From contig CBFDEM010000036.1 in the NCBI GenBank assembly GCA_965603825.1, positions 124,001-188,000 on the forward strand: a stretch of DNA of 64,000 nucleotides, given 5' to 3'. Numbering within the stretch: position 1 is the first letter of the stretch; every line of letters starts with the position of its first letter. A program made the position numbers and the translations under genes. Source of the DNA: Blepharisma stoltei ATCC 30299 (lineage: Eukaryota > Protista > Ciliophora). Below, in pieces: positions 1 to 64,000 of this stretch. The notes under the pieces are model-generated. The model was not told where the DNA came from and ran no database searches. It saw only the letters and a program-made list of their open reading frames with translations.

Positions 1-3000
1 CATCTCAGTTGATAGCTCCTCCTTTATAAGCCGCCCAATTGTTACTAAAATTGTTTGAGGAAATATCAAAATAGCAAGGAATTTCTGATTCCTCACAGCC
101 AATTTTTATAGCTCCTCCCATTCCATCAATTATTTCTTGAACTGATTTAGACTCCCAATCTTTAGCGTAATTTTCATCAAATATTGATGAAAAAACATTC
201 AAATTTATATTATTTGCCCAAATGGCTCCTCCACTGCCAGCTATATTTGAAATAAATCTAGAAGATTTTATATTGCATTGAGAAGAATTAAGATGATCAG
301 CTTTATTTTCTATATAAATAGCTCCACCTTTTTGAGCAGCATTATCGAAAAACTCAGATGAAATTATAGAAATATTATTACAGTCCGAGCAATATAATCC
401 CCCTCCAGTACTGCTATAGCCGTTTAAAAAATAGGATGATTCCGCTAATAAATTAATTTGAGATCCATAAATGCAAGAATTTGAATAATTCGTAAATGAT
501 GTGTTTGCTATTTCGATGAAGCTTGAATATGAATCGATTGATGAGTTTGAATTTATGAATATTGAATCTTTTAGAGTAAGGTTGCTGCTTTCATATAAAT
601 AAATTGATCCACCTGCACTATTTGAAAAAAGATTTAAAAATGTTGATGAAAAAATCTTTAGGGTGCTAAATGTTGAGTGCAAAGCTGCTCCAGAATTGTT
701 TGAAAATCCATCATGGAAGTTTGAATTTATGATCGTTACGGAACTGGAGCTTAACAAAATAAAGCAGCCTTCATCTCCATTTTGATTAGAAAAGGAAGTG
801 TTGCCAATCACAGCATTTGAGTCTTCTAGATGAATGCCTGGGTATTTTTGGCTGACTGAGTTATTAGAAATTTCTGAGGAATTAATAGAAATAAGTGATG
901 CTAAAAGAGCTATAGTTCCTTCACCGTATGAATAGTTTTCAATTACCTTAGAATTATCTATTGACGAATTAGCATGTACGCTTGCCATAAATATAACTGA
1001 TCCTCTATTTTTACACGAGTTTTTATTAAGTATTGAGTTATATATATGAAATGTAGCATCTGAGTCAGCATATATAACACCTCCTGATGATTTTGAGGAA
1101 TTCTCTGTAAATTTGCAAGAAAAGCAAAAGTATTGAGACTTCAAGCTAATTGAAGCTATTCCACCATTAAGACTGCTACTACAGTTTATATAAATTGCAT
1201 TTTCAGCTACAAAAATAGCAGAATTCTTTAAGTTTAGAACTCCTCCAGAATTTGGTGAATAATTGTGCTGAAATCTTGAATTTTTATCAATTACATAGCC
1301 ATTATCAAGTGAAAATACAGATCCATTATTATATTCAAATAAGCAATAATTTGTCTCTAGTGTTGAGTTTGTATTTTGATTATCCAGTGATATAGTCATA
1401 TTACCTGTATTAAATTGAAAATTGCAAGAATTTAAAATCAATTTTGAAATTTTTTCAGGATTGTTTTCACCTATTCCTATATTTAACCCTGAGCTAAATA
1501 ACCCATCGTTCTTAACAAAATTGCAAGAATTAATTTCCAATAACCCATAAACATAATAAATTCAAATAGTGCCTGAGAAGCTTGCTTTATTTTCTTGAAA
1601 TTTACAATTATTTATTGAAGAAACAGTAGAAAGTTGGACATTTCCGTCAATAAAAAGCGAAGAGCCTGCATATGCCTTGTTGTTATAAAAATCAGTATTA
1701 TCAATTTTCAGCGTTAATAAGAATTCTACCGAAGAACTTTTTGATATGAAAATTCCCCCGCCATTGAGAGTGCAGGAGTTGCTTGTAAAAGTTGTTTTCA
1801 TGATAGAAAATAAAAAGTCCTTGACATCGTAAAGAGATAAAGAATAATAAACAGCGCCTCCATTTAAACTAGGCGATTTATTTGATTCAAAATGTGAAGA
1901 GATAATTCTAAGGTTCTGACCTACAAAATACAAAGCTCCACCTAAATCTGCGATATTATCTAAAAATGAACAATTTTGTAACAATAAATCGGAAAAACTA
2001 TTTATCACACCTGGATTTCTAGGCTGATTATTTTTATTTGAGATGAAAAATGAGTCCTTAATAGTCATAGACGCATTTTTATTTAGTGTTAAACAAATCC
2101 CATTGGAACCTGATCCATAGTTGTTTTCAAAATTTGATGAGCTTATTGTTGAATTTATTGTATTTGATATAATAATTCCTGGCAAATAGTTTTTACAATA
2201 ATTATTTAGAATGCTCACTTTGTCTAGACTAAAGTTAATTGAATCTGATATTGATGATAAAGACTCACAATTTAAATCTGGAGGATCAGTAGCGTTGAGC
2301 TTTATATACATATCTGGATTTTCAATAAAGTATTTCAAAATTATTGAGTTAGAATTCATAGATTCAGATGAAATTACGCCATTTGAAACCATAAAAATGT
2401 CCCTTAAATCGATATTAATCATTTTTACAATTTCAAGGATACCACTGCTAGCAGAGTAATTTTCAACAAAGCTTGAGTTTTGAATTTTTAATCATTTTGC
2501 TAAGTGCTTTCCTTCAGTAACATTTTGGTCATTAACAGAGATTTCTAAAATAAAATCTGATAAATATTTTTGGTTGATATAATCACTTTCAATATATATC
2601 AAAGGTCCAGTTTCAATCCCATTCAAAGTAAATGATGAATTTTTAATTAATAAATTCTGAGGCTCATATTTATAATATGAGTATAGTACTCCTGCCACTT
2701 TCCCATAGTTTGATGTAAAATTTGAGTTCACAATATGAATATGATTAAGAGTTGAATAAATAATTTCTCCATCGTCATTAGTTTCATTACTAAAATCATA
2801 ATATTGAGGTTGTATATTTATTATTCCAAACTCGCAATAGTTATATATAAAAATGCAAGAATCAATTTCTAACATCTGAAATATATTTAGAAATAATAAA
2901 GTGCCTCTGTTCGTAGAAATTAATTGCGGTTCCAGCACTACGTTATACATAAAATTAACATTTCTCAAAGAAATAGATTTCGAAAAAATCACATTTAAAA

Positions 3001-4796
3001 ATCCTTTCATATGAATTGAATCCTTTATTTCATATCCATTATTGACCCTACTCACAGTGCCTTTATTAAATTGTAGGCATCCTAGGCTGTTCCATGAAAT
3101 AATCGCAGAATTATCGTTATTATGAACTTTAATATTATCAAACGTGACATTATTGAGAGTCAGGTTGCTGCCATTTGTGATCCAAAAAATCGAATTAAAA
3201 TCTGTTCGAAAATTTATAAAACTCACGTTGTTAAACACTAAATTGCTTGATATAACATCAAAAAAATTTATAGCGTTATTCATTGAACATCAAGAAATAG
3301 GTAAAAACGCCCCAATTCTTTCATCTCTATCGTTATAATAAATACTTAAATCTGAGCTTGTTGTAACAATAGGGCAATAATCGCAGTAATTATCATTATT
3401 ACAAAAGGAATCTGTATTTTTCCAGTCAAAAATGACATTATTTACTTCTAAATTTGAAATATCTGTTAAAGGAAATCAAAAAATTGACAGAGAAATATCG
3501 TTTTTTGCTCTTTTTATAGTGATTGGAGAATTATCTAAAGGTTTAATTTTTATATTTCTTGAAGTTAAAAATCCAAAAATATGTTTTGGGTTGTGATATT
3601 GATTACCCGTGTAACGATTTTTATATTTTATAGGCCGCTGTTCAGTATAGTAATTGCTTTGAGATAAATAAATAATCGAATACCTATACAGAACATTTGA
3701 AAGTGCATAACTTAGAGATGAAAATTGAGAATAATAAGTGCCATTCCCACTTATTCAATTAGCATTTTGACTTGGCTTCACAAAATAAACATGAGGGTTT
3801 TTTGCTGACGAAGTATCATTTGGAAGCATCTTTACAAGTGATCCATCAGGTAATAGCCAGGTGCCTACATCTCAATTTATATATGCTGTACAAGCTTGAT
3901 TTCATAAATAAGTAACAACTTGAACTATATTGTTTATGCATGAGAGGCACCCACTAAAATTATTATAAGACCGACGGCAATAATAATTGCGATAATTTTC
4001 GCAGTTGCCATTGGCATAATTGCATTCTAAAATATTGCACTCTTGATAACAATTTAAAAAATTTAATGCTTTTTCTGCTGAGCATGTATAATTAGAAGCT
4101 TTATAACAGTCCTCTAGATGCACAACATATGAAAAATCATTCCGGATAATTTGCTGATAGGATGAAAAAATAGCTAATGACTTGTTTTGGCATCAGTTGT
4201 TAGGATATTGGTCCACTTTGTCATAATTGCAGTTTAATGTCATGCATTCTGGCTTGCATTTTCCATAATCTGTCCATTTACAATTATCTGAACATTGGCA
4301 ATCTTTATAATCGTATAAACAATCTTCATTATTGCAAGCAGAATCGCATACTCCATTTCCTAGCATGGCGGGAAAGCATCCATCTGCGCACTGTCCACAG
4401 TCATGATTATCAAGGTCGCAGCTTCAGTTATCACATTTTTCGTCACAATTTCCGTCACCAAGCATAGAATTTAAACACCCTGGGGAACAAGTGCAATCGC
4501 CTCAATCATACCCGCAGTTTTCAGTGTTACAAGACGCATCGCAGATTCCATTTCCTAGATTTTGGGGATCGCAACCATCTAAAACACAGTTTTCATAGCA
4601 ATCTGATTGTTTTTTATCAATTGAACCAAAGAACTGAGCGCTAGTGTCATAGTCACAATAGGATGTCATGCATTCAGGATTGCACTGGCGATTACTTTTC
4701 TACTTTAAAAATTACTTGAATATCTGGACAAATCGATGAACTGCAAGTAAGATTTAAGCCTTTGGCAAACAACAAGGAAAGAGCTAGAAAAATCAT
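1..4796 (-). CDS. Family A receptor copy A1 (signal peptide-LNR-beta-helix...), 3' end runs off the window
   Basis: ATG at 4796 (MIFLALSLLFAKGLNLTC). A 16-nt intron lies at 4700-4715. ORF-track pieces 3902-4123, 2492-3283, 1562-2422 and 5-1540 are all in one frame, separated by TGA. LNR motifs (GNGICDASCNTENCGYDWGDC) and GGAI/FxxN repeats. Colinear with A2 and A3. Confidence 0.92.
4700..4715 (-). other. 16-nt spliceosomal intron GTAATTTTTAAAGTAG
   Basis: GT-AG. Removal restores the frame (CPDIQ|KSNRQCNPEC). Same position in all 7 receptor genes. Confidence 0.92.
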
Positions 4797-5050
4797 TTTT
4801 TCAAAATTAAATATAAATTTCAATTGCTTAAATAAAATTATGATAAAAAAGTTAGTCATATTTAATTATTTAATATATTATCACTAGCTTTTTTTTTTAA
4901 TTTAGAAGTTTGAGAAAACACTATTACAATAATCTCTATTTTCATCGGCAAATATTCAGATAATTATTTCAAAGTTTATCTATAATTTAAACTTTTATGA
5001 TGAATTTATTTTAATAATTTTTCTAATTTACTAAGAGCCTCGAATGTTAC

Positions 5051-8000
5051 TTATTGAATGCTCTCTTTATTATCTAGAGCATTGCTTTCATTGATTGATA
5101 TGCTATTTGATGCTAAGGAAACTTCAATTAGATTGAAAGCTGCTTTTGAATTTTCACTTTTATAACTGTTTTCTTCTGAGTAATTTTCCACTTTTTTGGA
5201 TTTTCTGAAGCTCCTAACTTTATTAATTATTGACCGAGAAATCGTTTTGATGACGCAAAATGATCAATAAATTAAAAAATAACAATTTGCTATTACTATA
5301 ATCGTAAAGAAAAAGTATCCAGCTTCATCACTTAAAGATCCCATTAAATAGTAAAGCCCACTTCATATAGTGGCTGCACACACTATCCTTGACCTTAATT
5401 CCATTTGATTTAGATTAGGCTCAATATAAGGGTTATTTGAATACTGTAGTCGTAAATATATTGAATATAAAATAGCCACAATTATTGCTTGAATCTTTAA
5501 AGATACTCTTGCTAAAAAAACTGAACAGCAAATAAGAATAATTTTGCTATACAAAATGATAAATTCCCAAAAATAGTGATTATCTTTGTATCCATTGAAA
5601 AGAAATCCATATCTTAGACGCACACCTAAATCACTAAGTCTGCTTCTATTTCTAATAATATTTATCAAGCAAACTGTCGGTAAAATAATTCCTCATAAAA
5701 TAATAGATGGCAACGAAATGGTTGTCACATAAACTATATGATCATAATTTCAGCATCTAATATCAAGATTTTCTTCTAACCAATATTCGCCAGGATTAAT
5801 TTCTGTGCAATTCATTGAAGCAAACATTTTTCTCACTACACTTGGATGAATTAAAAATAATAAAATAATCCCAGTTGATATAAAATCATCCCAAAATGTT
5901 TTATATGAAGTTTTGACTAATTTTATAATAATCCAAAAAAATAAACTCAAAACCAGCATAGCAGCTGGAATTAAAGCTACCATAATAAGAATTTTGAAAT
6001 AAACTAAATTGCTGCTATTATTTGCTCCAAATAAACACTCAAATGAATAAATTTGCTGGTATACATAATCTGCATTATTTTGAATTTTAAAAAGGCTTAA
6101 AACTTCAGATGATCAGTTGAGCTTAAAAGTGGATACTAAAATGATCATTTGAAAATAATTCAAAAATATTTTTATGAAAATTGAAATTTGGGACTTTGGC
6201 TTTAGAGCGGATTTTCTTGTTGTTTTTATGATAATTACCAATAAAAAGATCATTCCTATTGTTATGCCTATAGTCATTATAACGTTGGTTTTAAATCCTG
6301 GACACTTTTCACATTTGTTGCTTGAGGTATAAGAAAATCCTGCTTTGCAAGATTGACATTTATTGCCCTTGTAGGCTTCACTGCATTCACCTGTATATGA
6401 AATATTATTTATATTAGGTGAGCCTAAACAAGAAGAAGGATTAGGGCATTTTCAAAATTTATCTGTAAGCATATTATCTCTCCAATATCCAGGTCGTGGA
6501 ACCATTGTATAATTTCCAAGGCATTGAGCTGCATCGGGACAAGAAAGGCAAGAAATCAAGTCTGGGTTCAAACTATAAAACCCTTGAGGACATATTTGAC
6601 AATTTTTTCCTGATTTGACCTCTCCAATTTTGCATTTTCTCATATTCACATTTAATATCAAATTTTGACTATAATAGTTTTGACCTGAAGATTTTATTTT
6701 GGAAATATCAATTGCCGAAGAGGTAGCAATTATTTGGATATTCGATCCAGGCTCATCAGAAATAACAAATTCAGAGAAGTTAAATATTCCTTTTAATGCA
6801 GTAACTTTTGTTGCTCCTGAAATTTGGGTCGTTAAACTTGTAGATTTAAGCACTGCTTCACTAACATTATCAGTAGCTATGATATAATTTAAATCGTCAA
6901 CCAAAGCAATTTGCAGTTGATTTTTAATATTTTGTCCAGGTGCTATTTCTGTTAAATTTAGGCTTGAAACAGGGTCTGATAATGATCTTTTGCTATTAAA
7001 ATCTGCTAGACTGCCATCTGCTTTTACTTGCATTAGTTTGATTGGAAACGAAGCTATATCTTTACCGTATTGAGCTGCATTATTCTGGTATGTATTATTG
7101 AAAAGTGAAGGAGTTTGGTCATCTCAGCTGATACCTCCACCATTATATTCTGCGAAGTTTTCAATAAAAACGCCTGAATTAATATCAAATTTACATTTTT
7201 TTGTATCGAAACAGTTCATATTGATTCCCCCTCCGATCCCACTATCAATGTTTTTAGTTGTTGAGTATTGGCCTGGAATCGCTTTATTCTGCTTAAAATT
7301 GGAAAAAATTATTTTTAAATTTGCATTATTCGAGTATATTGCTCCTCCGTTTTGTGCCAAATTATTTATAAATTTGCTTGAAGTCACATTAACGTTACTA
7401 CTGATATCTTTTGTGGATTTAAAATATAAAGCACCTCCATATAAAGACGCAAAGTTATTTGCAAAATTACAATATATAATTTCTATATTCCTACATGAAT
7501 CACAATAAAGGGCTCCTCCATTATTTCCTGAGCCGTTGCTTAGCGAAGAATTTATAATTTCTAGCTTTTTTAATTGTTTTCCATATATCCCTGTAAGAGA
7601 AAATTTATTAAAAATTGAATTTTCTATAGATAATTCAACTTGATTCGCATTGATTACTCCACCTCCAATAGGGCTTTCTATATCAACGAAATTCGAGCTA
7701 TTTATGGATATTTGGCTATCGAAAGAAGCATAAATTGCACCTCCACTAGGAGATGATAATTTGTTAAAAAATGAGTCATTGATTAATAATGTGCTTGAGC
7801 TTGCATAAATTGCTCCACCTCTTTCATTTGATTTTCCATTAGAAAAGGTTGCATTAGCTACATATGCATTGCTTTCAGCTAATAAATATATAAAACTTCC
7901 TGAAGTACTTCTTTGATTTTCAAATTTTGAATCATATATTTCTGCATTCGAATATGTTAGTGATAACCCTGGACTGTATCCGTCTGCAGAATTATTGCTA

Positions 8001-11000
8001 AAAATAGATGATGAGATTACTATTTTTGAACTAACCAAATAAATCAAACCTAAGTTTGATGCATAATTATTGGAAAATTGGGATAAAATTAGAGAAGAAG
8101 GCACCAAATTGCAGTTAAAAGCATAGATTGCAGACCCATCACTTTCGCATGAATTTTTTTCTAATTTTGAATTTAATATAAAAAATTGAGACTCTTGTTC
8201 AGCGTTTAGTACTCCACCTCTCATTTTTGCTTTATTTTGAATAAATGAACAACTTTCACAATGAAAAATCGATTTCGAAGTAATTGCTATGGCTCCTCCG
8301 TATTCCTCACATGTATTATTTAAAAATTGCGATGAGCTTGCATATAAAATAGCAGAGTTTTGAAGGTAAAAACAAGATCCATAAGGAGCAGAATTAAACT
8401 GAAAAACAGAACCATTATCTGTAAAATAATCAAAATTCAAAAAAGCGACTCTTGCATTGTTGTATTCAAAAACAGAATTCTTAGTTTCAACAGTTGAATT
8501 TCTATTTTGACTGTCTGCATATATAACTGAGCTTCCAGTATTATTTCTGAAAATAGAGAGCTCAATGCATATTTTTGAAGGCAAATTTTTTTTATCTTCT
8601 CCTATATCAATTGCCAAAACAGCAGCCAAATATGAAGAATTTTCAATGAAAACACAGGATTTAAAAGATAAAATTCCACTGCTGAAATATAGTATTATAG
8701 TTCCTGACTGTTTTGAAACGTTTTCATTGAAACTAGAAACTAATATAACTGACTCTTTAGAAAGTGCTACTGAGCTATCGATATATAAGGCTGCACCATT
8801 ATGTGCATAATTTCCTATAAAATTTGATTGCAAGATTCTAAGATCAAGACTTTCTGATGGTCTTGAGCTCTGAGTCAAAAAAATTGCTCCTCCATTAGAA
8901 GAAGCTGAATTTTGGATAAAATCACTTGATGATATAAGAAGCGACGATATTTTATTATTTTGCAGCAAAGAAATAAAATATAAGGCTCCACCACTGCCCT
9001 GCCTTGACTCATTTGAATCAAAGATTGAAGACTCAATAAAAATACTTACTCCTGAAAAATAAACTGCAGGGGATAAACTTGCTGAGTTATTAATGAAAGA
9101 ACAGTTTGATATATATAAAATATTCTCACTCTCTACCCCTAGTGCACCATATCCTGAAATGTAATTGTTTATATTCTCAATAAATTCTAAATTAGTGAAA
9201 TTTCTATCATAAGATCCTGTAAAATAAAAACATACTGGCAATCGTCCATTTCCAACATTTCCAGAGCAGCTTAGAGAATTTAAACTATTGGAATTTGAAT
9301 TATCAATTATAAAAGTTGGCGATGAATTTCTGCAGATATTTTTTGTAATATTAACACCTTCAATACCTAAATTAATTGATTTCGATAAACTCACCATATA
9401 TTCACAATCTAAAGTTTTTGCATCATATTTTTCTTTACTTATATACAAGTCTCAAGCATCCCTATTTTCAATAAAATATTTAAGAACTAGGGAATTGACA
9501 TCTGCATCATCGTACGGAGATCCATTAGAATCTATAGTCAAATTTTTTAAATCAAAGTTGACCAAATTTACTGCAGTGATCATTCCTTTGGCATGATTAT
9601 TTTTGAAAGAAATATCAATAAATTTGCATCATCTCGGGACTGAAAAGACATCAATGGATCTTGAATTCTTTATAATAATTTGGGTTGTTTTGGTTTTATA
9701 ATAATCTAATATGGCTGAGTTGTATATATAAATTAATGAATTACTTTCTGCTCCATTTAATTCAAAGGTCAAATTGCTTAGGTGAACATTTAATAGCAAG
9801 CCAACAAACTCTACACGGATTAATCCCAATTTTCCATAGTTTGATATAAAATTGGTGTTCTTAATGTCTATGTGAGAAATAGTCACATAAGTTAAATATC
9901 AAGTTTCGTTAAAACTAGAATCATAACTGTCTATATTTAATTTGCTGTAAAATATCCCTGTTTCGCAATAATTATACATAAAAGTGCAGTTATCCATTTC
10001 AAATTTTGCCAAATTGCTAATATATATTAGTGAGCCACTCGAAAGAGAGCTTTGCGGTTTTAAATAAATCAAATTATATTTAAAATCCACATTTTTTATA
10101 GTAAGAGCTGAATTTGATTCATAATATAGAAATCCCCGAAAATCAAGTGGGTCTCCAAATTCAAATCCGTTATTTAATCTAGTCACAGAGCCTCCTAAGT
10201 AAGTAAAATTTCCATCTGGATGCACAACTGCATTTTTTTCTTTACCACTTAGCCATATATTATCAAAAAATACATTAAATAGCTCAATTGCCCCATTCCC
10301 AGATATAATGGAGTCATAATTGAATCTAAAATTTCTAATTTCAACATTCGTTAATGTAAATGCAGATTTAGCATAAAATAGGCTAAGACTCCCAGTTTCT
10401 TCAATCTGGCAGCTATCTAAAGATATATTTTGTGATATGCGCTGATTTCTATCATTATAGTAATAGCCGTCACTTTCATTATAAAAACTATAGGCACAAT
10501 AATCGCAATATATAGAATTACACCCATTATCCTGTCCAGATCCATCGATAATCACATTTTCAAACTTGATATAAGAAACCATTGAGCATGAAAGCCGCGA
10601 TCATCCATTAATCTTTATCAAAATCTTACTTCCATCATACGAGGCTATAACAACAGATGAGACTTTTCCTAAAGGATCACAGTCAGTTAAAGTATAATTT
10701 CCATCGTTATATAAATAGAAATAAATTTGTTGATTATCTCATTCTGGTGGATCAAGTATTTCAGTATTAGACAGTTTAGACTGTAATGCATAATCAAGTG
10801 TTTCAAAAGGAAAAATCAAAGTCCCATTTCCTGATGGATAAGGCCCTTTCTGAGTTGAAGTCACATAATAAAACTGAAAGTCTGGATGCTTAAAGAGTTT
10901 TCAATTATTATAGTAGAGTAAATAAAATTCACCTATGTATAAAGCCGAAGGATAACAGACATTGTTTAAGGCTCCACATAGATCACAGCTGTAAAGATTA

Positions 11001-12172
11001 CAATAATTACATAAATTTCCTTCAGGAAAATCAGGACAATTCCTTAAATCTATAATGTGGCATAAGCCGTAATTACATTCTCTAAAAAAACATTCAGGGT
11101 AGCATGATACTGAGTCTAATGACATTGTTACATTGCATTTATTAGATGATACAATTGAGCAAGCTTCAAAAGATACAATAGCATTTAAACTATGATAAAA
11201 ATATTGCTGATAAATGGTGTATTTTATTAAATCTTCATCATAGCACCACTTGCTAGGATCACTGCTTACTCTATCATACTTGCAATCACTTACTAAACAC
11301 TCTGGTTTGCATTTTCCATAATCTTCTGGCATACAATAAGGTGAACACCCACAAGCAAAATTGTCATATTTACAACGAAAAGTATTGCAAGCTTCATCAC
11401 ATACCTCGTTTCTAAGCATGTCTAAATAGCATCCACTCTCACAAAAGCCACAATTTCCAGCATCAAAATCACAATCATAGGTATTGCAAACCTCATCACA
11501 TATATCATTTTGTAATAACTCTAAAGTGCATCCAGAAAAGCAATCACAGTCGAATTCATCATAATTGCATTCTTCGACATGACAAGCTTCGTCACAAATG
11601 GAATTTCCAATCATTCACAAATAGCAATTAGGTGCACAAGTGACATTGAAGCAGTCTCCATTATCATAATTGCATTGGGAATTATTACATTCATCATTAC
11701 ATATCCCATCTCCTCATATAGTCAAATTGCAGCCTTCAGCACATTCTCAGCAGGCTCCCATGTCAAAATAGCAAGATTCTGTAGCGCACTCAGGATCGCA
11801 CTCGTTTCCTAATTGAGATTTTTGACCTATATATGGAATACATGATTGAGCGCAGTAACCGCAATCTCCTAAGTCATATCCGCAATAAAACTTATCGCAC
11901 CAATCATCGCAATAGCCATCCCCAAGAAAATTCAAATCGCAAGATCTAACGCTGCTAGGGCATTGTGAAAGACAATCTGAGCTTTCAACTTGAGTTGAGG
12001 AATTATAAAGACCTCCTGTATCATAATTGCAAAAAGGATTCATGCAGCCAGGATTGCATATGCCATCGCCTCGCTGATTAGGAATTACGAATATTGGAGG
12101 GCATTTGTTGGGATTGCACAGCATATCTATGCTAAAAACAGGAATTCAAAAGATCAAAGAAAGCCAGAACAT
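5051..12172 (-). CDS. Family B receptor copy B1, ~2368 aa: signal peptide, ~7+2 LNR, beta-helix, stalk, Cys-rich module, ~9 TM
   Basis: ATG 12172 (MFWLSLIFWIPVFS), TAA 5051-5053. All ORF-track fragments share one frame joined by TGA. C-terminal RYGFLFNGYKDNHYFWEF motif plus hydrophobic segments. Confidence 0.92.
12074..12088 (-). other. 15-nt in-frame, stop-less intron GTAATTCCTAATCAG (read as VIPNQ in the ORF track)
   Basis: GT-AG with A at -6. Homologous position to the family A introns. Removal gives CPPIF|RGDGICNPGC, which aligns gap-free to A CPDIM|KGNHQCNPEC. Confidence 0.82.
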
Positions 12173-19482: not shown

Positions 19483-19639
19483 ATTTTTATTAAAATTGAG
19501 GAAATCAAGAAATTATATTTTTCAAAAAAGATTAGCTAACTATTTTTTCAGCAAGTTATCTTTATTGAACTTTTATTTGTTTTATCCTTATGAATTAATA
19601 TTCATGTCACTTTCTTCTGTGGCTTTGTCTACAGGCAAG

Positions 19640-22610: not shown

Positions 22611-22625
22611 ACTTTTAATAAAAAT

Positions 22626-29744: not shown

Positions 29745-29946
29745 GATACATTTTGGCTCTTGAAGTAGAGGGCCTATTTACAAGGCAAATACACTTTACA
29801 AAGCAAAGAGTGAGGCATACAGGGCATTAATTATCTCAGACTACCAAATTTAAATCTTTTAAAGATACATAAAACGCTGTGAGATTGTGTCAAAGCCTTT
29901 TGACGAAACTGATTCAGAAACTAATGAATTTTGCTCAAATGAAGAA

Positions 29947-52174: not shown

Positions 52175-54493
52175 TTATTGGAACTTAGAGCCATAAATGT
52201 CTGAGTTATGGTTGAATTCTTTATGCAAATCTAATGATAACTGTATATAATGTCTTGACTCTTCCCATCTTTGCTCTTTAAAATATAGAGCTCCAAGCAA
52301 GTTATATATAGCTAGTTTTGAAAATCGATCATTGCATCTCTTGGTGCTAACAACCTCTTCAGCGTATTTTAAAATTTTTTCTGCCTTTGGAAAAGTATTG
52401 AATAAATTAATATAAATTTTGGCAAGCTCAATATAGTCACTGATGCAATCTAGGTCATTGATTTTTATATTTTTTTGAGGACATAATAAAATTTTGTCTA
52501 TGATCAATAATATTTCCGCTTCACCCAGATATTTTTCTGCTTGCTCAATTTTATTATAAGCTATATACAGCTCTGCCAGTTTAATTAAGTAATAAGGTCT
52601 TCTAAATTTTAAATATTCACAATTTATTAATATTTCGTTTATCTTCGACAATATAATTTCACATTTTTCATATTGAAAAATTCAATAAAAATAATCAAAA
52701 ACAAAATTCGAAGACTTAAAAAATATATCAATTTGATTTGCATCATAGTAATCAATAAATTTAATCGCTTCAGCAAAATATATAGCGTATTTATCTCAGC
52801 CAATTAAATAGCACAATTCTCCAATATATGCATTGACAATAAATAATTCACTTTTATAAATTTCTTCGAAATAAAGCATTTGCTCTTGTACTCAGATTAG
52901 GCACTCAATTGCTCTCTCATAATTAAACATTCAAAAATAAGCGATCCCTATAGAAAATTTAAGGAATAATAGCTCATGTCCTAATGAATTATTTGCTGCG
53001 TATTCAAAGCACATCAAAGCATCCTTATATCATTGACTATTTAAATAAAATACTCCCATGGCTTTATATATTTCTTTTACTTTGGGATCGCCGGAAGACA
53101 AAATACCAATCAAGGAATTAGCATTATGAAAATATATGTGAGCTCTTTTAAAATCCCCTTTTAATGTATAAATTTTTCCTAAATATAAGTACAAACCTGA
53201 TAGTTCATCAGAGCTGTTAAATTCATTTTGCTTGGATAATTTTATGCACATTCATATCTTTTTAATAGCTTTCTCATAACTATTTAAAAGATAATCAATC
53301 TCTGCAATAGTTGCGTAAAATTTAAATTTATTCTTATTCAAGAAATTTACTTCTTCTTTTTCTATGATTTCAAGAATTTTTTTCACTTTTTTTGTTTTAT
53401 TTAGGGACTTATATGTCATTGCCAAACCACGATAAGGATCAAATAAAAGTTTTGAAAATTCACTTTTCTTCAGTTCTTTATGATAATTGATAGATTTCAT
53501 GAAATATATTTTTGCTTTATTGTAGTTTTTATTATTATAATGCAATCAGCCTAGTTCTTGATTGAGGATTATTGCATCATATTTATAGCCAAAGTTTCAG
53601 CAAAAGTTTTTTACTCTGAGAAGAAAATTAAAGAGGCAACTATTTTTACTTTCATTTCTAAATATTGCTGAAAGTATTCGGATCAAAGAATTCTTTAAGG
53701 TTGACTCACTTGTTTGATATGAACTAATATCTAATGCTTCTCATTGCTCCAAGAGTTTATTATAATCCTCTTTCTTTATAAATTTTTTAAGAATATTACA
53801 AAATTCCTCACAAATAGATAAAGTTTTTTCAATTAAAGGATGATAATACAATTCTTTATAGCTTAGCAAACTTTGAATTAATTCATAAGCCATCTCATAT
53901 TCAGAAATTTGAATAAAATTGGAAAATAAAATATAGCAAAAACTTGATATATGAGACTTATAATAGCTTGTCTTGTGTTCAAATCCATGAATGTATCTTT
54001 GATCCTCAAATTTAAAATAATTGAAATCAAATACATAGGTTTTAAATGATTTATAAAAATGTATCAAATCTTCTGAATATCTAAAATTATTTACGTATTT
54101 CTTTGCTTTGCAAGGTGGCTCGATTAAAAAATACTCAAAAGGACTCAAAATTAATTTTGTAGAAACGAATTGCTTTCTTGCTAAGAGCAATAAGATTCTA
54201 TTACAGTAATTATAGGCTTCAGTTATTGTTTTTAATCTAGAAATGTATTCTTCTGAATCGCTTTGATTTTTTGGATTAATTAAATCATTAGAATAAAAGG
54301 TAAATTTCTCCCTTACAGCGAGTATAAAATTGATCAAAATTTCTTTTGATTTATTGTTGACTGAAATCTTTATACGCTCGAGTTCGAAACCTTGACTTTT
54401 GTAATAAAAATAATGCTTTGGGCAAGCAAAGTGGCCGCAGCTTGATATGAAGATTGCATCAAAAGAATCCAGAGAGCAGCTAACTTTATTCAT
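52175..54493 (-). CDS. Family T copy T3, intact, ~772 aa TPR-like protein
   Basis: Four ORF pieces in one frame. I translated the gaps and found only TGA. Colinear with T1 and T2. Confidence 0.9.
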
Positions 54494-54770
54494 AATTATT
54501 TATATTTTTATTTATATATTGAACCTTAATAAAATTAATTTTATTATTAATTCGTTTTGGATTTATTGAATTTCTAGTCATAAAGTTCCAATACTCCATC
54601 AATATCAAATAATCTTTAATTAAGATCTTTTACTGCATTTGATTTATGATTAAATTTTTATTGCAAATCTAATGATAGCTGACTGTAGAGTTTTAACGCT
54701 TCCCATTTTGGTCTTTAAAATATAGAGCTCCAAGACAATAGCATATAGAGAGTATTTGTTCAATAAACAG

Positions 54771-55022
54771 TATCAAGCAAGGTCGCATAAGATAGTCTGC
54801 CACTCAAAACTTGATCCTAGAAGATAAAGAGGAGGTATAGGAGGAAGAGCTGACATCAGGGTCCGAATGAGGGGCAAGGTGGTATCTGAGCTAAGTTGCA
54901 GGCGCAGTCATCTCAACCGAGTTCAATGGTGACGTCACAAAGCACTAAAATCCCCTGCTGTGATCCGTGGTGATTACTCAAACAAGACAGCTTCTATTAT
55001 TTGATTAAGGCTAAGGATATCA
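54771..55022. mobile_element. ~247-bp GC-richer insertion, probably bounded by a TATCA direct repeat
   Basis: Interrupts T homology between ...LND and ...YCLGALY. TATCA at 54771-54775 and 55018-55022. The left boundary is less certain. Confidence 0.55.
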
Positions 55023-55158
55023 TTGAGTCCCTTGATATTAACAACCTTTTCAGAGTATTTTAAATTTTTTTCGGACATTTCCCATCAAAAGTATTGAATA
55101 AACTAATATAAATTTTCATTATAATTACTAATGCAATCTAGCTCATTGAGTTTTATAG

Positions 55159-55489
55159 TTTTTGAGATTAATTAAGATGAAGTTATGCGTGGTGACTGAT
55201 GGAGACTCACCCATTAGTTTGACGCGAAAATGTTTTTTACCCAAGCAGGATTTGATGCATGAAGGAACTAGCTTTATTTCCTTCATGATCTGACTTAATC
55301 ATTCTCAGGCTAAATAAAGCTTCAGAAGTATGAGAGCTTTTCGCCTTCAATCTTTTATCTGTGGGCCAAGAAAAGTGTATAATTGATTAATTAAACCATC
55401 GCTATTTGGTCATTTTACACTGGCCCTGATTAACTCTAAGGCACCAAAACTTATATCCACTCACGATTTAATAATTCCCTTTTTGAGAT
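55159..55489. mobile_element. 321-bp insertion bounded by the 10-bp direct repeat TTTTTGAGAT
   Basis: Repeats at 55159-55168 and 55480-55489. Removal rejoins ...SKTIKLNELDC, comparable to T1 SKKSIKINDLDC. Confidence 0.8.
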
Positions 55490-55827
55490 AAAATAAAATT
55501 TAGTCTGCATTTCAATAACTTTTCAGCTTCGCCAAATATTTTCTGTTTCTTTGTTTAACTGTAAGTTATATGCAGCTCTACTAATTGAATAAAATATAAA
55601 GGCATTCTAAACTTTAAATGAGCTCATATTCTAATTATTTTTATGCTCTTCTTTAAATTAGAATATAAATCTTATACTCATATTTATTTTTCAAACTTTT
55701 TATTTTCAATTAATTTAGATATTTAAATAATAATAAATCATTAACTATTGACGATAAAATTACCTAAAGTACTTTAGTGATGAATATAGCATTTTTTATA
55801 TAAAAATAAAATTATTACTATACTTTT

Positions 55828-58800
55828 TTAACCATGAACTGATTCGTTCTCTGAAGCAAAAGGATCTAATTCCATGGAAACCATTGCACCATCCCTTAAC
55901 TCAGATAAATATCCAACACTTGAAATGTTCATAGATGTCATGAGCTTGTGATCTTGATCAATTACACTTCTATAATCTAAGTCTTCTCTGACCTGATATT
56001 TTTTATCTTTATCAATGTGCAAAACTTTTGCTAAAATCATGATGCACTTTTTAAATATAGAAATTTGCATTAAAAGCAGTCCTGATATATATATGATAAA
56101 TAGGAAGTTAAAAAGCAATAAAAGAATAAGTAAAATAATATTCCCAAAACAATCTAAATCATCAGTTATAAAGAAGAGACCAGCTATAATTGTTATAAGA
56201 GCAGAGGCTATAGAAAATATTTCTACTTTATTGATTTGAGTTTCACAATAAGGGTGATTTTTAGCTTGAGTGTGGAGAAATATAGCAAGCATTAGAGCTA
56301 CTGTAAGTGCTTGAATATTTGTTGAAAGATTTGAGAAAAACACTGAAAGTATAATCAAAATAACTTTTCAATATAAGATTAAGAACTCCCAATAATAATA
56401 CTTTGAGTTATACCCATTAAATAAAAATCCAAATCTCAATTTTACTGATATATCTTCTAACTTGTTTCTATTTTTTACTAATTTTATAAGACAGAGTGCA
56501 GGAACTGCAATTACCCAAATATTTATTGTAGGCAATGCGAATAAAAGCACATAAAACAAATGATTATAGTCCCAACATCTAATTCCAAGGTCTGCATATA
56601 ATCAATATTCTCCACTATTTATTTCTTTGCAACTAAAAATACTGAACATTGTATTAGTAATACTTGGGTGAATTAAAAATAAGATTACTGCAAATGTCGA
56701 AAGGTAATCGTCTTTAAGCTCTCTTAGATTCTTCCTTTTTATTGCATAAATTATTAATCATAAAAGCAGGCAAATGAACGCAAGAGAAAATGGAGTTAAG
56801 CTGGTAATCAATATTTTGTAATAATAAATATCACTTTTTGAATATAATTTTTGTAAAAAACAATCAACAAAAAATAATTGTGCTCCTATATAGTCCATGC
56901 AAGTCTGAATATAAAATAATTGAACTGCTTCATAAGGCCAATTTAAGCTAAAAGTAGCTATAATGATCATGATCTGCAAATAATTCCAAAAAATTTTTAT
57001 ATAAATAGATGACAAAGATGCTTGCTCGAAAGCAGATTTCCTTGAAGTTTTTATTATAACTATCACCATAAAAACAAGCAAACTAAAAATTCCGGAAAGC
57101 CTAAAAACATTACTGACAATGCTAGGACATTCTTGGCATTCATTTTTATATAATCTTGAATATCCTTCCTGACATGAGTGGCACATGTTATTTTCATATC
57201 CTTTTGCACATTTTCCGGTAAAGGATAAGTTTAAAATATCTGGAGACCCTAAGCAAGCTGGTGGGTATGGGCATTTCCAAAAATGATCTGTAAATTTATT
57301 GTCCCTCCAATACCCATGCTTCGGGGCTATTGTATAGTTTCCATAGCAATTTGCAGAAGATGGGCAACTTAAGCACTTAGAATTTTTAATATCAATATTA
57401 TAGTAATTTTCAAGGCAGCTTTCACACTCAAGACCGACAGTAGCCTCACCAATCTCACACAGCCTCAAGTTGACATATATAGGCAATCTTGATGACATTT
57501 GTATCGGATAAGAAGATTTACTCATTTTTGAATCGTCTATCGCTGAAGAAATAACAGACATTTCAAGAGAAGATCCTGGTTTTGCTGTAATAATATACTC
57601 ATTAAAATGAAATATTCCGTTAACTGCATTTGCAATTGATGTCCCAGAAATAATTAAATCATCACTTGAAGATAGAAGCTGGGCCTGACTCGAGCAATCT
57701 GTTGTAATTATTTGCGAAATATCATCAATCAAAGCAAAAGTTAATGGCGGATTTTTATTTTGTCCAGATGCAATATCATTAAGAATTAAATCTAAATTTC
57801 TCCGATATTGAAGAACTCTTTGGTTTGTGCCATTTAGGAACACCATCATAGCTGGAAATGAGGCTATATCATTTCCATATAGAGCTGAATTATTTCAAAA
57901 ATTATTATTTTCCAATATTGGTTTTGAGTTATCCCAGCTAATAGCTCCTCCTTTATAAACAGCCAAATTATTACTAAAGTTGTTTCAGGAAATATCAAAG
58001 TAGCAAGGAATTTCTGAATCCACACAACTAACTTTTATAGCTCCTCCAATACCATCAGTTATTTCTTGAATCGTTTTTGTCTCCCAATCTTCAGCATAAT
58101 TTTTATCAAATCTTGATGAAAAAATATTCAAATTTATATTATTTGTCCAAATAGCCCCTCCATTCCCAGCCATATTTGAAATAAATGAAGAGGAATTTAT
58201 ATTGCATTGAGAAGAATTAAGATGATCAGCTTGATTTTCTAGATAAATTGCTCCACCTTTTTGAGCGACATTATTAGAAAACTCAGATGAAATAATAGAA
58301 ATATTATTGCATTCCGAACAATATAATGCTGCTCCAACAGCACTATAACCGTTTAAAAAATAAGATGACTCAGATGATAAATTTATTCGAGAGCCATAAA
58401 TACAAGAACTTGAATAATTTGTAAAAGATGTATTTGTTATGTTGACGAAGCTTGAATATGAGTCGATTGATGAACTTGTATTTATAAATATTGAATCTTT
58501 TAGAGTAAGATTGCTACTTTCATACAAATAAATTGAGCCTCCTGAGCTATTTGAAAAAAGATTTAAAAATGTTGATGAAAAAATTTTGAGAACGCTAGAG
58601 GTTGCGTGCAAAGCAGTTCCAGAGCTGCTAGAAAATCCATCATGAAAGCTTGAATTTATGATCTTTGCAAAGCTGGAGCTTAGTAAAATAGAGCATCCTT
58701 CATTTCCATTTTGATTAAAAAAGGAAGTATTCGTAATTAAAGCTATTGAGTTTTCTAGATGAATTCCTGGATTTTTTTGGCTAACTGAGTTATTAGAGAT

Positions 58801-61800
58801 TTCTGAGGAATTGATAAAAATTGCTGATCCTAAAAGAGCTATAGTCCCTTCACCGTATGCATAGTTTTCAAATATCTTAGAATTATCTATAGTTGAATTA
58901 ACAAATACGCTTGCCATAAATATAGCAGACCCTCTATTTTTGCACGAGTTTTTATTTATTATTGAGCTGTATATATGAAATTCAGCATTTGAGTCAGCAT
59001 ATATAACACCTCCTGAAGATTCTGCAGAATTCTCTGTAAATTTGCACGAAAAGCAAAAGTATTGAGACTTCAAGGTAAGTGAAGCAACTCCACCGTTAAG
59101 ACTGCTACTGCAGTTTATATAAATTGCATTTTCTGCTACAAAAATTGCAGAATTTTTTAAATTCAAAACTCCTCCAGAATTTGGTGAATAATTATGTTGA
59201 ATCCTTGAATTTTTATCAGTTGCATAACCATTATCAAGTGAAAATACAGATCCATAATTATATTCGAATTGGCAATAATTTATCTCTAATGTCGAGTTTG
59301 TATTTTGATCATCCAGAGATATCGTCACATTCCCCGTATTGAATTGAAAATCGCAATAATTTAAAGTTAATTTAGAATTGTTTTCAGAGCTGTTTTCACC
59401 TATTGCTATATTTAACCCTGAACTATATAGCCCATTGTTTTCAAAAAAACTGCAAGAATTAATTTCCAATATCCCATAAGTATAATAAATTCAAATAGTG
59501 CCTGAGAAACTTGCTTTATTTTCTTTAAATTCGCAGTTGCTAATTGAAGAATTAGGAGAAAGCTGAACATTTCCGTCTATAAAAAGTGAAGAGCCAGCAT
59601 ATGCTTTGTTGTTATAAAAATGAGAGCCATCAATTTCTAGCTCTAATGTCAGTTCTGATAAAGAACTTTTGGATATAAAAATCCCTCCTCCATTGAGATT
59701 GCAGGAATTGTTTGTGAAAGTTGTATTCGTGATAGAAAATAATGAATTTTTGATATCATAAAGAGACAAAAAATAATAAATAGCTGCTCCATTCAAATTA
59801 GGTGATCTGTTTGAGTCAAAATATGAAGAAATAATTCTAAGATTCTGGCCTACAAAATACAAAGCTCCACCTCAATCTGCAATATTATTTAAAAATGTAC
59901 AATTTTGTAACAATAAATCAGAAAGACTATATATCGCACCTGGGTTTCTGGGCTGATTATTCTGATTTGAGATAAAAAACGAATCTTTGATAGTCATAGA
60001 AGAACTTTTATCACTCGTTAAACAAATCCCATTGAATCCTGATCCGCTATTATTTTCAAAATTTGATATGCTTATTGTTGAATTTGTTGTATTTGATATA
60101 ATAATTCTTGGTAAAGAATTTTTACAATAATTTTTTAGAATGCTCACTTTGTCTAGATTTAAGTTTATGGAATCTGATATTGATGATAAAGACTCGCAAT
60201 TTAAATCTGGAGGATCAGTAATATTGAGTTTTATATACATATCTGGGTTTTCAATATAATATTTTGATATTATTGAGTTAGCATTCATAGACCCAGATGA
60301 TGCTAAGCCATTTGAAACCATAAAAACACCCTTTAAATCTATATTAATCATTTTTGTAACTTCAAGGATTCCACTACTACCAGAATAATTTTCAACAAAG
60401 CTCGAGTTATGAATTTTTACTCATTTTGCTAAGTATTTTCCTCCAACAAGATTATTGTTATTTGCAGAAGATGTATTTAAAATAATATCTGATAAATATT
60501 TTTGGTTAATATAATTGCTTTCAATATATATTAAAGGTCCAGTTTCAATTCCATTATGCGTAAATGATGAATTTTCAATAAGCAAATTTTGAGATTCATA
60601 TTTATGATATGAATATAATACCCCTGAGATTTTCCCATAGTTTGATGTAAAATTTGAACTCACAATAAAAATATGATTCAGAGTTGAGTAAATAATTTCT
60701 CCATAGTCATTTGTTTGATTGCTAAAATCATTGTATTGCTGTTGTATATTTATTATTCCAAAATCGCAATAGTTATATATGAAAGTGCAAGAATCAATGA
60801 CTAGCATCTGAAATAAATTAAGAAATACTAATGCGCCTCGGTTCGCTGCAATTGATAACGGTTCTTCCACAACATTATACATAAAATTAACGTCTCTCAA
60901 AACAATTGATTTCGCTAAAATAACATTTAAAAATCCTTTCATACGAATTGAGTCTTTTATTTCATATCCATTATTGACCCTACTAACAGTGCCTTTATTA
61001 AATTGTAGAGTTCCTGTGCTGTTTCATACAATAATTGCAGAATTATCGCTATTATAAACCTTAACATTATCAAACGTGACATTATTGAGAGTCATATTGC
61101 TGTTTTTTGCGACCCAAAAAATCGAATTAAAATCTGTTCGAAAATTAATAAAACCCACGTTGTTTAGCACCAAATTGCTTGATGTAATATTGAAAAAAAA
61201 TTTACCGTTATTTATTGAACATCAAGTGCCAGATAAAAAATCATTAATTTTTTCACCTCTATCGTTATAATAAAGACTTAAATCTGAGCTTGATGTAACA
61301 ACAGGGCAATAATCGCAGTAATCATCATTTTTACAAGAGGAAATTGTATTTTTCCAATCAAAAATGACATTATTTATTTCTAAATTTGAAATATTTCCCA
61401 ATTGAAATCAAAATACTGACGAAGAAATATCATCTTTTCCTCTTTTTATAGTAATTGGGGAATTTTCCAAAGTTTTAATTTTTATATTTCTTGAAGTTAA
61501 ATTTCTAAAAATATAGTTTGGGTCATAATATCTACTGTTCATTAGCCCATTTTTTAATTCTATAGTCCGTTGTTCAGTGTAGTAATTGCTTTGAGATAAA
61601 TAAATTATTGAATAATTGTAAAAAATGTTTGCAAGTGCATAACTTAGAGATGAAAATTGAGAAAAATAAGTGCCATTACCACTTAATCAGCCAGAATTTG
61701 TGCTTGGCTTCACAAAATAAATATGAGGATTTTTTGCTGATGAAGTATCAATTGGAATTATTTTTGTCAATGATCCATCAGGAAATAATCCTGTATATAA

Positions 61801-62733
61801 CTCTCAATGGCTAAAGATAGTGCAAGTTCGATTAAAATTATAAGCAATAATTTGATATTTATTATTTATGCATGTGAGGCAGCCACTAAAATTCTTATAA
61901 GAGCGCCGGCAATAGGCATCAGAATAATGTTCGCAGTTGCCATTGGCATAGTTGCATTCTAAAATATTGCATTCTTGATAACAGTTTACAAAATTTAATG
62001 CTTTTTCTTTTGAGCATGTATAATTAGAAGCCTTATAACAGTTTTCAAGATTCACAACATATGAAAAATCATTACGGATAATTTGCTGATAAGATGAAAA
62101 AATAGCTAATGACTTATTTTGACATCAATTATTAGGATATTGATCTATTTTGTCATAATTGCAGTTCGCTATCATGCATTCTGGTAGACATAATCCATAA
62201 TCTGTCCATTTGCAATTTTCGGCACATTGACAATCTTTATAATCGAATAAACAATCTTCATTATTGCATGCAGAGTCACATATTCCATTCCCTAGCATAG
62301 TTGGAAAACATCCATCTGCGCACTGTCCACAGTCATGATTATCAAGGTCGCAATTTCAGTTATCACATTCTTCATCACAATTTCCATCACCGAGCATAGA
62401 ATTAAAGCATCCTGGGGAGCAAGTGCAATCGCCTCAGTCAAATCCACAGCTTGTAGTGTTACAAGAAGTATCGCATATGCCATTTCCTAGATTTTGAGGA
62501 TCGCAGCCATCGAAAATGCAGTTTTCATAGCAGTCTGAGTTTTTTTTATGCAGTGAGCTATTAAATTGAAAACTGGTGTCATAATTGCAAAAGGACGTCA
62601 TACATTCAGGATTGCACTGGCGATTGCCTTTCTATGTAAAAATTACTATGATATCTGGGCAAATGTGCGAGCTGCAGGTAAGATCTAAACCTTTGACAAA
62701 TCATAAGAAAAGGAAAGCAATTAGAAAATTCAT
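55828..62733 (-). CDS. Family A receptor copy A3, ~2296 aa
   Basis: ATG 62733 (MNFLIAFLFLWFVKGLDLTC), TAA 55828-55830. Single frame, 15-nt intron. Confidence 0.92.
62632..62646 (-). other. 15-nt intron GTAATTTTTACATAG in A3
   Basis: GT-AG with an in-frame TAG. Junction CPDII|KGNRQC. Confidence 0.92.
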
Positions 62734-62904: not shown

Positions 62905-63370
62905 ATTCATAATTATTTTAGTAAACGCTAATTTCAGAGACTAAATTCTATAATTATTTAAACTTAATTATCGTTTGAGAGATGGATTTGTTTGAATAAT
63001 TTTTCTAAAGCATTGCGAACTTATAGACCACTATGATTTCTTGAAGAAAAAAAAACTTCTTTAAAATCCCAAGGTTTTTGATCAGCAATTTTCATGAATT
63101 CTGACGTGAAAAACATAAAATCATTTTATTGATATTAAAGAAATATCAGAAAATAAGGACTATCTAAAGCGTAAAGTGACTTAATATTTTATTCAATGAG
63201 CAGAGCTGTATATATTGCTCTGAATGAAATGGAAGAAGCAGAAAAATATTTGAGTGAATCTGAAAAATATTGAATATAAATAAAATTTTATTATTTTCGA
63301 AAATTCAAAAATTAAAAATTATATTGTATGAATAACCATATAGAGGTTGCCAAAATTTCTATTACAGGTT
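62905..63370 (+). pseudogene. Heavily decayed 3' relic of a family T gene
   Basis: TATTTTATTCAATGAGCAGAGCTGTATATA (63186-63215) is the same as in T1. TTAAAATCCCAA and ATAGAGGTTGCCAAAATTT also match T1/T2. Limits are approximate. Confidence 0.7.
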
Positions 63371-63473
63371 TAACTTTTTTCGCTATTTTTTGAGTGGCTT
63401 TAATCGGCTACTCTATACTCGGCACTTCTAGAAACTAAGTTCACCCATAATATATAAAAATAAAATATAGAGC

Positions 63474-64000
63474 ATGAAAAAAGAAAGCTGTTCTTGCTGC
63501 TCTCTAGACGCAATATTTACATCCAGTTTGGCAAGTTTAAAGCATGCCCAAAGCATTATTTTTCTTATAAAGCTCAAGGTTACAAGCTAACACGAATAAA
63601 GGTCTCAATCAACATTGAATCCTGAGAGATCTTGCTCGGTTTTATTGTCACGTTAAAGAACAAGTTTAAAGCCCGAATCGATGATTTAAATAAAGAATAC
63701 TCCGTGAATGAGGAAGAATATCTGGAGAAATTAGACTGCCTAAATGAAGTTTTTAATTACTGCAGCTATATGGTGATATTTTTAGAAAAAAAGAATTTTG
63801 TTTATATGAAACTTATTTTAAGTCCCTTTGAATATTTTTTAACTCAACCAAAGGAAAAAGCACAGCAATATACAGAGCAAAATTGAAACCGGATGGAGCT
63901 TTTAGAATTTCATCGATCAGTTAAAGCACATGTGCTTGATTTCAATTATTTTAGATTTGAGAATCAAAAATATATTCACGGCTGGGCTTATAAGTCCGAT
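63474..64000 (+). pseudogene. Family T copy T4, 5' part, 1-nt frameshift at ~63528; runs off the window
   Basis: MKKESCSCCSLDAIFTSS, then homology (KFKACPKHYF) continues in the shifted frame of ORF 63632. Could be a sequencing error. Confidence 0.72.

Follow-up and report, generated by a model that had tools for sequence, protein, structure and literature searches.

Linked A- and B-type giant receptor genes and a local array of putative TPR-protein genes on a Blepharisma stoltei contig

Blepharisma is an early-branching ciliate, and we know of no gamone receptor or cell-cell recognition molecule of this genus that has been described at gene level. The window considered here is a stretch of 64,000 nucleotides from Blepharisma stoltei ATCC 30299, positions 124001-188000 of contig 36 (CBFDEM010000036.1; contigs are abbreviated C36 and so on) in a somatic, or macronuclear (MAC), genome assembly of 41.5 Mb in 64 contigs. 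A first-pass annotation of its letters alone had proposed a recognition locus in which two giant receptor-like membrane proteins, A and B, and a cytosolic protein, T, recur in the cyclic order T, B, A and are inherited together as functional partners. The locus raises the question of which of these neighbors belong together, and why. As judged by sequence comparisons across the genome, A and B are an old linked, co-duplicated evolutionary pair; the evidence for this is given first, followed by the evidence on T.

A-type and B-type genes across the genome

The G+C content of the window is 30%. When TGA was read as a sense codon, seven giant open reading frames (ORFs) of 2264-2404 codons and four to five ORFs of about 775 codons were obtained. 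The TGA codons lie mostly opposite tryptophan in aligned paralogs, so TGA was taken to encode Trp; whole ORFs translated in this way were used for the in-house comparisons, and domain searches were run on stop-free pieces and database proteins. Comparison by blastp of the ORFs read in code 4 gave three families: A (about 2266 aa), B (about 2340-2400 aa) and T (about 775 aa). A1, A2 and A3 are 79-85% identical to one another and B1, B2, B3 and B4 are 76-91% identical; identity between A and B is about 36% over the full length. The genes and relics of A, B and T occupy about 90% of the window, in agreement with the first-pass view that nearly all coding DNA falls into three families. Likewise, the description of A and B as diverged paralogs was borne out by this level of identity, by their shared domains and by a single intron at the same place. 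B1 is 99% identical to P0004 (CAG9324278.1), and A3 corresponds to P0001 (CAG9324295.1), with about 86% identity over the matched region. Both database proteins are labelled Blepharisma stoltei, and the titles of such entries say no more than 'unnamed protein product' or 'LNR domain-containing protein'.

Genome-wide, the receptor module matched about 80 times, and the matches form tandem arrays on numerous contigs. By this sequence count the genome encodes at least 60-80 giant, putatively receptor-like membrane proteins belonging to one lineage-specific family. Genes were assigned to the A or B type by their bit scores against A and B queries together with inspection of the DNA at each locus; the loci on C23, C28 and C37 were taken from an assembly containing internal eliminated sequences (IESs), the MAC+IES assembly. 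Co-oriented A-type and B-type neighbors were found at eight loci on seven contigs: C36, C8a, C8b, C53a, C39, C23, C28 and C37. At C8a the order is A A A, an inverted B, then A A B, and this inverted B is the only copy not co-oriented with its neighbors. C8b has A B with a spacer of 40 bp, C53a and C37 each have B A, C39 has an A and an A relic followed by B A, C23 has A B A, and C28 has B A B. Lone genes were found at two further loci, a B on C21 and an A on C53b. The arrays of C30, C51, C1, C35 and C25 and the one at the far end of C39 gave about equal scores with both queries and appear to be same-type arrays of other clades.

Phylogenetic analysis of 39 sequences recovered an A-clade of 17 and a B-clade of 14 as sister groups with 100% support each, and the other B. 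stoltei clades fell outside them. The A- and B-clades were divided into the same three subclades: {C53a, C23}, {C28, C37, C39} and {C8, C36, plus C21 or C53b}. Within C36 the tree shapes also matched, being (A3,(A1,A2)) for A and (B4,(B1,(B3,B2))) for B. A second tree based on the C-terminal module alone recovered the same clades. Mirror-tree comparison of patristic distances gave r = 0.97 for 11 pairs (permutation p = 5e-5) and r = 0.96 when one pair was taken per locus (p = 3.5e-4). Thus, the co-divergence of A and B that the first-pass annotation had suggested looking for was found, both in the distances and in the matching subclades.

Linkage and mirrored trees of this kind would also be seen if A and B were an obligate working pair, a heteromer or a ligand and its receptor, whose adjacency is kept by selection and in which, by analogy with known paired recognition genes, each pair would supply a new self/non-self, mate or prey specificity. 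The side-by-side, co-oriented placement of A and B at the eight loci and the near-equal distances between partners (r = 0.96-0.97) would fit such a pair, as would the 7-kb open frames, kept under purifying selection in both families with faster change near the tip of the ectodomain. A ciliate precedent exists in the MTA/MTB mating-type genes of Tetrahymena thermophila, a pair that is likewise paralogous, adjacent and co-evolving (PMC7786109), and a 2024 review still calls the Blepharisma gamone receptors 'putative' (PMC10892320). However, the mirrored trees alone do not show a working pair, because block duplication of a two-gene unit predicts them too. The copies are not in a 1:1 ratio: A outnumbers B by five to two at C8a and by two to one, plus an A relic, at C39, B outnumbers A by two to one at C28, and the genes on C21 and C53b have no partner beside them. 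Only nine alignment columns are fixed for different residues in A-type and B-type proteins, against 316 invariant columns common to both, which gives little sign of complementary specialization. Rather than being divergently transcribed, the two genes of a pair follow each other head to tail and have separate upstream regions, and, in contrast to a mating-type locus, a single macronucleus contains many pairs. On balance we consider an obligate working pair unlikely. At least 10 A/B pairs coexist in the one macronuclear assembly. By analogy with Tetrahymena, they might be co-diverged obligate couples that together form a repertoire of surface specificities for conspecifics, mates or prey, in which case the paired-paralog logic of MTA/MTB would have been invented independently in a ciliate, on the basis of a receptor architecture of which no member has been characterized; this proposal must be regarded as doubtful.

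Several of the receptor arrays lie near contig ends (C8:1-55332, C53:4777-19730, C21:17235-24050, and C39 at 602-633 of 639 kb), which hints at a preference for subtelomeric sites. At the C23 locus of the MAC+IES assembly, a called gene with an RVT_1 reverse-transcriptase domain lies at 3848-4432, just upstream of the A-B-A array. The receptor genes at this locus are 1-2 kb longer in that assembly than their coding length, and they therefore carry IESs.

Gene order, block duplication and the T family

The order of genes in the window is as the first-pass annotation had listed it. T0, B3, A2, a T relic, T1 and T2 follow one another on the plus strand; A3, T relics, T3 and B4, and separately B2, B1 and A1, follow one another on the minus strand, and beyond the window A1 is followed by a T gene. 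In a self-comparison by blastn, A1 with 340 bp of upstream DNA proved to be an inverted copy of A2 (90%). B1 and B2 form a tandem repeat with a unit of 7.3 kb (91%), and each of them is a copy of B3 in inverted orientation (92%). The copies A3 and B4, matching at 84-86%, are older. The B1-to-A1 and B3-to-A2 spacers are homologous at about 90%, their sole difference being a 0.7-kb repeat inserted in the latter, and downstream of A1 and A2 about 440 nt are homologous, including a relic of the 5' end of a T gene, after which homology stops. The homologous spacers reported in the first-pass annotation were therefore confirmed for these two regions. Synonymous divergence (dS) is 0.21 between A1 and A2 and 0.19 between B1 and B3, and at the older level it is 0.40-0.41 between A1 or A2 and A3 and 0.43-0.44 between B1 or B3 and B4. 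Because dS is equal in the two families at both levels, A and B must have been copied together.

The seven co-oriented junctions between families on C36 all fit T to B, B to A or A to T. This is an argument for a co-inherited three-gene cassette in which T is an intracellular partner of A and B, and the T fragments that travel with the duplicated B-to-A block point the same way. Since the blocks are inverted or tandem copies, however, the B1-to-A1 and B3-to-A2 junctions count as one. In all, the seven junctions reduce to about four independent events, for which the chance of full agreement is about 0.125, by our own arithmetic and allowing for two cyclic orders. By sequence comparison, then, the T-B-A order is not beyond what chance and block duplication would give, and carries little weight. 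The cyclic order itself stands as first described; its reading as a functional cassette is not supported by so few independent junctions. The order is better read in the way that the same annotation gave as its alternative, as something left behind passively by segmental duplication, and this is also sufficient for the linkage of A and B. It should also be noted that the 190 nt upstream of B3 (22420-22610) resemble, at 77%, a stretch upstream of the T1 start (38090-38258). From this similarity it looks as if the B-to-A block had been inserted at the head of a T gene.

The T proteins are soluble, with neither a signal peptide nor a transmembrane (TM) or other hydrophobic segment. T3 shows a Cys/His motif near the N-terminus as well as a helical domain and putative tetratricopeptide repeats (TPRs). 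Solubility, TPRs and a Cys/His motif would suit an adaptor. Owing to the in-frame TGA codons, T was scanned for TPRs as stop-free pieces only, and TPR models matched its C-terminal half at E = 3e-6 to 5e-3, all below cut-off (TPR_12, 27.7 versus 30.1 bits). The N-terminal 252 aa had no Pfam match. A C..C..C-x5-6-C-x2-H pattern is visible in the alignment of this region, but an AlphaFold2 (AF2) model of the domain, with a predicted local distance difference test score (pLDDT) of 69, had no match in the PDB. Feature matches in the ESM Atlas to RING, MYND and TPR reached only 0.77-0.81, below the level at which they were counted, and the region was not classed as a RING or MYND zinc finger.

Of the 25 genomic matches to the T N-domain, 19 fall within 66-188 kb of C36, a broken copy on C38 accounts for two, and the other four are weak and distant. 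The inspected flank (C36:60-124 kb) contains a group of about nine T genes at 90-121 kb, some on each strand and with no receptor gene among them, and a further one at 66-70 kb. Several copies in the array to the left of the window (C36:90268-120680) are fragmented, and the copy at 118303-120680 is directly downstream of A1. No T gene or other TPR gene was found, in DNA or in gene calls, beside the receptor genes at nine other loci (on C8, C53, C21, C39, C23, C28 and C37). Hence, in the genome-wide adjacency mapping that the first-pass annotation had suggested, A beside B was recovered at eight loci and T beside A/B at none of the nine others. Between T3 and other T genes dS is 0.83-1.1, a divergence much older than that of the A and B copies. 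The T tree groups the neighbor of A1 with T113 and T110 in a deep clade, gives T3 a deep branch to itself and places T1, the neighbor of A2, in the crown together with T90, T94 and T100. The T tree disagrees with those of A and B, because A1 and A2 are sisters while the T copies beside them fall in different clades. In addition, most of the receptor-adjacent T copies are broken. T as a co-inherited partner thus found no support: the family is nearly confined to C36, has its own receptor-free array there, and does not track A and B in tree or dS. From these comparisons T would be a local array and is strongly disfavoured as a partner in a three-gene recognition cassette; we regard T as an intracellular partner of A and B as very improbable.

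The course of events that we propose is as follows. Within a cluster spanning about 66-188 kb of C36, which includes the window, a head-to-tail unit of one A-type and one B-type gene would have landed in an older tandem array of soluble T genes and then been copied within it. An older split would have separated A3 and B4 from the other copies (dS about 0.4), and a later inverted duplication of the B-to-A block would have produced A1/B1 and A2/B3 (dS about 0.2), the duplicated block carrying short flanks with T fragments. A 7.3-kb tandem copy of B1 would have given B2, which is now dead. The T-B-A order would then be a footprint of block duplications rather than a functional three-gene cassette. 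Passive co-duplication of A and B, each functioning as a receptor in its own right, is in our judgment the probable explanation. The following points weigh against it. Both gene types have been kept, deeply and repeatedly, at eight of ten loci, as selection for a working pair would also give. For the arrays of C30, C51, C1, C35 and C25 and that at the far end of C39, the type was judged solely by comparing bit scores. Finally, the trees are quick searches supported by the Shimodaira-Hasegawa-like approximate likelihood ratio test (SH-aLRT) only, with some rows stitched together from tblastn pieces of the IES-containing assembly.

Receptor architecture, transcription and other features of the window

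From the N- to the C-terminus, A and B carry several LNR repeats, Chlam_PMP and Beta_helix domains, Ephrin_rec_like and DUF7630 (Pfam); we describe them as having an LNR tip, a PMP/beta-helix rod, a Cys-rich stalk, DUF7630 and a module of about nine TM helices. Hydropathy indicates a signal peptide and a C-terminal part with six to seven hydrophobic segments followed by a tail of 65-85 aa. LNR (PF00066; gathering score 21.2) was exceeded by two pieces of B1 (47.9 and 39.7 bits), by a piece of A2 (29.0) and by P0004 and P0001 (69.1 and 43.0 bits, three stretches each). B1 matched Chlam_PMP (PF02415) at 39.3 bits and Beta_helix (PF13229) at 35.2, the gathering scores being 20.6 and 25.9; for A1, Chlam_PMP was above cut-off at 27.0 bits and Beta_helix fell just under it at 25.3. 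DUF7630 (PF24633) matched P0001 at 27.3 bits against a cut-off of 27, and matched 27 of 31 family members at E <= 0.01. No match to the TRP-like/Flc family (PF06011) reached the gathering score of 28.5; a piece of B3 scored 17.2 bits, and three of the 31 members matched weakly, the best at E = 1.4e-4.

The C-terminal 488 aa of P0001 were folded with AF2 using 31 homologs. The model of this C-terminal module (pLDDT 82; predicted TM-score, pTM, 0.78) combines a small beta part rich in Cys with about nine helices, which we read as putative TM helices, and with a short sheet on the extracellular side. No solved fold was matched: a Foldseek search of the PDB gave nothing below E = 0.09, and the best Z in VIA-align was 8, on partial helices only. 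In the ESM Atlas, clusters matched the module at a TM-score of 0.72-0.78 (normalized by query), and those with DUF7630 at 0.73-0.78. These are uncharacterized proteins of green algae, cnidarians, haptophytes, sponges and ciliates that carry Ephrin_rec_like, DUF7630 and sometimes PF06011, LRR or Chlam_PMP; PF06011 was present in 12% of one structurally matching cluster. The DUF7630 plus nine-helix module is widespread in eukaryotes, and no solved structure or functionally characterized member of it was found.

The overall ratio of nonsynonymous to synonymous divergence (dN/dS) in A and B is about 0.3, rising to 0.5-0.9 at codons of about 200-500, around the LNR/beta-helix junction. Between B1 and B3 the ratio exceeds 1 in the first 100 codons, where few changes are involved. 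The membrane-distal part of A and B, at the LNR/beta-helix junction, is thus diversifying faster than the remainder. A and B are probably cell-surface sensors or adhesins.

Every A and B gene has an intron of 15-16 nt of the form GTA..TAG at one shared position after the first Cys motif. In B1, B2 and B4 the 15-nt intron is in frame and free of stops, and the public models P0004 and P0162 keep it as five residues, 'VIPNQ'. Expression was assessed from one study, as assembled contigs of four runs; their RNA nature was a guess, supported by the spliced B4 intron, and such contigs neither rank genes by expression nor correlate their expression. One contig of run X2 lacks exactly 51832-51846, the 15-nt B4 intron, and because an RNA-type contig removes exactly these nucleotides, B4 is transcribed and spliced. 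The 5' part of B4 was covered in all four runs, A3 was covered once, and the 3' end of T3 was covered in two of the four. A T-derived C-terminal fragment between A3 and T3 (54619-55083, with a minus-strand ORF at 54653-54973) was present in RNA-type contigs of all four runs, at a contig depth higher than that of intact T3.

Large families in tandem arrays, several of them near contig ends, with variable ectodomain patches and pseudogenes, would also be expected of a variant surface coat, in which one or a few receptors are expressed at a time and pairing has no meaning. However, multi-pass proteins of 2300 aa with a conserved nine-TM module fit signaling or transport better, and B4, seen in every run, is not switched off. 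A surface coat therefore seems most unlikely.

The remaining features of the window are listed in Table 1. Pseudogenes are abundant, as had been stated from the letters alone: B2, T1 and T2 are broken and there are several T relics. The insert in the B3-to-A2 spacer, absent from the homologous B1-to-A1 spacer, is a GC-richer segment of about 0.7 kb containing (AAAAGACCA)x10. Four further copies (82-91%) lie on C3, C27, C60 and C29; the segment is probably either a mobile element with dispersed copies or a small gene that has been repeated. Two further giant ORFs flank the cluster, at C36:189032-197020 (2663 codons) and C36:78934-86760 (2609 codons); neither has blastp similarity to A or B. A database protein of 2663 aa, P0131, was considered as the product of the gene to the right of the window and dropped, blastp similarity being nil. 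An Rfam search of the window gave no RNA family.

Table 1. Features of the window (window positions, except where C36 is given)
Feature	Position	Strand	Remarks
A1, A-type receptor	2..4699	-	3' part beyond window start; blastp, Pfam
A1, full gene	C36:121908-128699		2264 aa, intact
B1, B-type receptor	5054..12157	-	intact; = P0004 / CAG9324278.1
B2, tandem copy of B1	12377..19512	-	7.3-kb unit, 91% nt; pseudogene, 11-nt and 2-nt deletions
T0, T relic	19684..20489	+	two frames; matches T residues ~450-719
B3, B-type receptor	22626..29744	+	intact; inverted copy of B1/B2, 92% nt
B3 intron, 15 nt	22710-22724	+	
Dispersed repeat in B3-to-A2 spacer	29800..30480	not assigned	9-nt tandem repeat, would encode KRP repeats
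A2, A-type receptor	30850..37747	+	intact; inverted copy of A1, 90% nt
A2 intron, 16 nt	30931-30946	+	
Relic of T 5' end, just downstream of A2	37886..38061	+	homologous relics downstream of A1
T1, TPR gene	38299..40730	+	1-nt deletion in T run near 40194, giving a frameshift
T2, TPR gene	41180..44057	+	split by ~314-bp insert at 43005-43318
B4, B-type receptor	44758..51930	-	intact, transcribed
B4 intron, 15 nt	51832-51846	-	removed in one RNA-type contig
T3	52175..54493	-	774 aa; no other T copy of the window has a single open frame
Relics of T C-terminal parts, between A3 and T3	54580..55620	-	
A3, A-type receptor	55828..62727	-	intact
Relic of T C-terminal part, upstream of T4	63057..63382	+	
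T4, TPR gene start	63464..64000	+	runs past window end; later in-frame TAA, probably broken

Relatives and comparison with known systems

Outside B. stoltei, the receptor family was represented by sequences from environmental and transcriptome collections. The family is extensive beyond Blepharisma as well, with 3971 cluster representatives at E <= 0.001, and the non-Blepharisma representatives that were sampled are metagenome or MMETSP sequences, with no named Stentor or other Blepharisma protein among 30 sampled clusters. Three long metagenome contigs each carried a single homolog, with no paralog or TPR gene as a neighbor. Among 18 metagenome loci there were two tandem cases, and most of the sampled homologs are single genes among housekeeping genes. 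All sampled metagenome homologs fell outside the whole B. stoltei expansion in the C-terminal-module tree, and for this reason they are uninformative on the A/B pair. In the literature, including the B. stoltei genome paper, no description of this receptor family was found.

The analysis provides a genome-wide candidate list for a giant LNR/beta-helix/nine-TM family, one branch of which occurs as co-diverging two-gene units at eight loci. It turns a vague idea of paired receptors into one that can be tested, by comparing partner with non-partner combinations in co-expression and binding, and it disposes of the attractive but mistaken idea of the TPR gene as a third partner.

Among known systems, the closest is MTA/MTB, which we compared with A/B by organization. 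In both cases the products are large multi-pass membrane proteins with Cys-rich ectodomains, and their two genes are paralogs of a single origin that are neighbors in the macronucleus of a ciliate and show parallel divergence. MTA and MTB are arranged head to head, however, whereas A and B are head to tail, and a single MTA/MTB pair, which specifies the mating type, remains per macronucleus after programmed rearrangement, in contrast to the at least 10 A/B pairs of this one assembly, where the rule of one pair per macronucleus does not apply. Moreover, the LNR repeats, the PMP beta-helix and DUF7630 with its nine or so TM helices are not as described for MTA/MTB.

TgrB1 and TgrC1 of Dictyostelium are linked, diversified receptor genes that form a ligand-receptor allorecognition couple. 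The Tgr proteins are single-pass and contain IPT/TIG folds, and their genes are divergently transcribed and extremely polymorphic between strains. By analogy, A and B may be likened to them as linked, diversified receptor genes proposed to form such a couple. They differ from the Tgr type in being co-oriented genes for nine-TM LNR/beta-helix proteins, seen here in one strain.

For the C-terminal module, the fungal TRP-like/Flc proteins (PF06011) offer a lead only: their matches to the TM module are weak and all below cut-off, and A and B are without the ML-like domain. The multi-pass proteins that combine Ephrin_rec_like with DUF7630 are nearer, having the same predicted fold of this module (TM-score 0.72-0.78) and, in some clusters, Chlam_PMP, but their ectodomains are LRR, START, TIR and others. 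Among the systems compared, the combination of LNR repeats with a beta-helix, the size of 2300 aa and the paired genes were seen in Blepharisma stoltei only.

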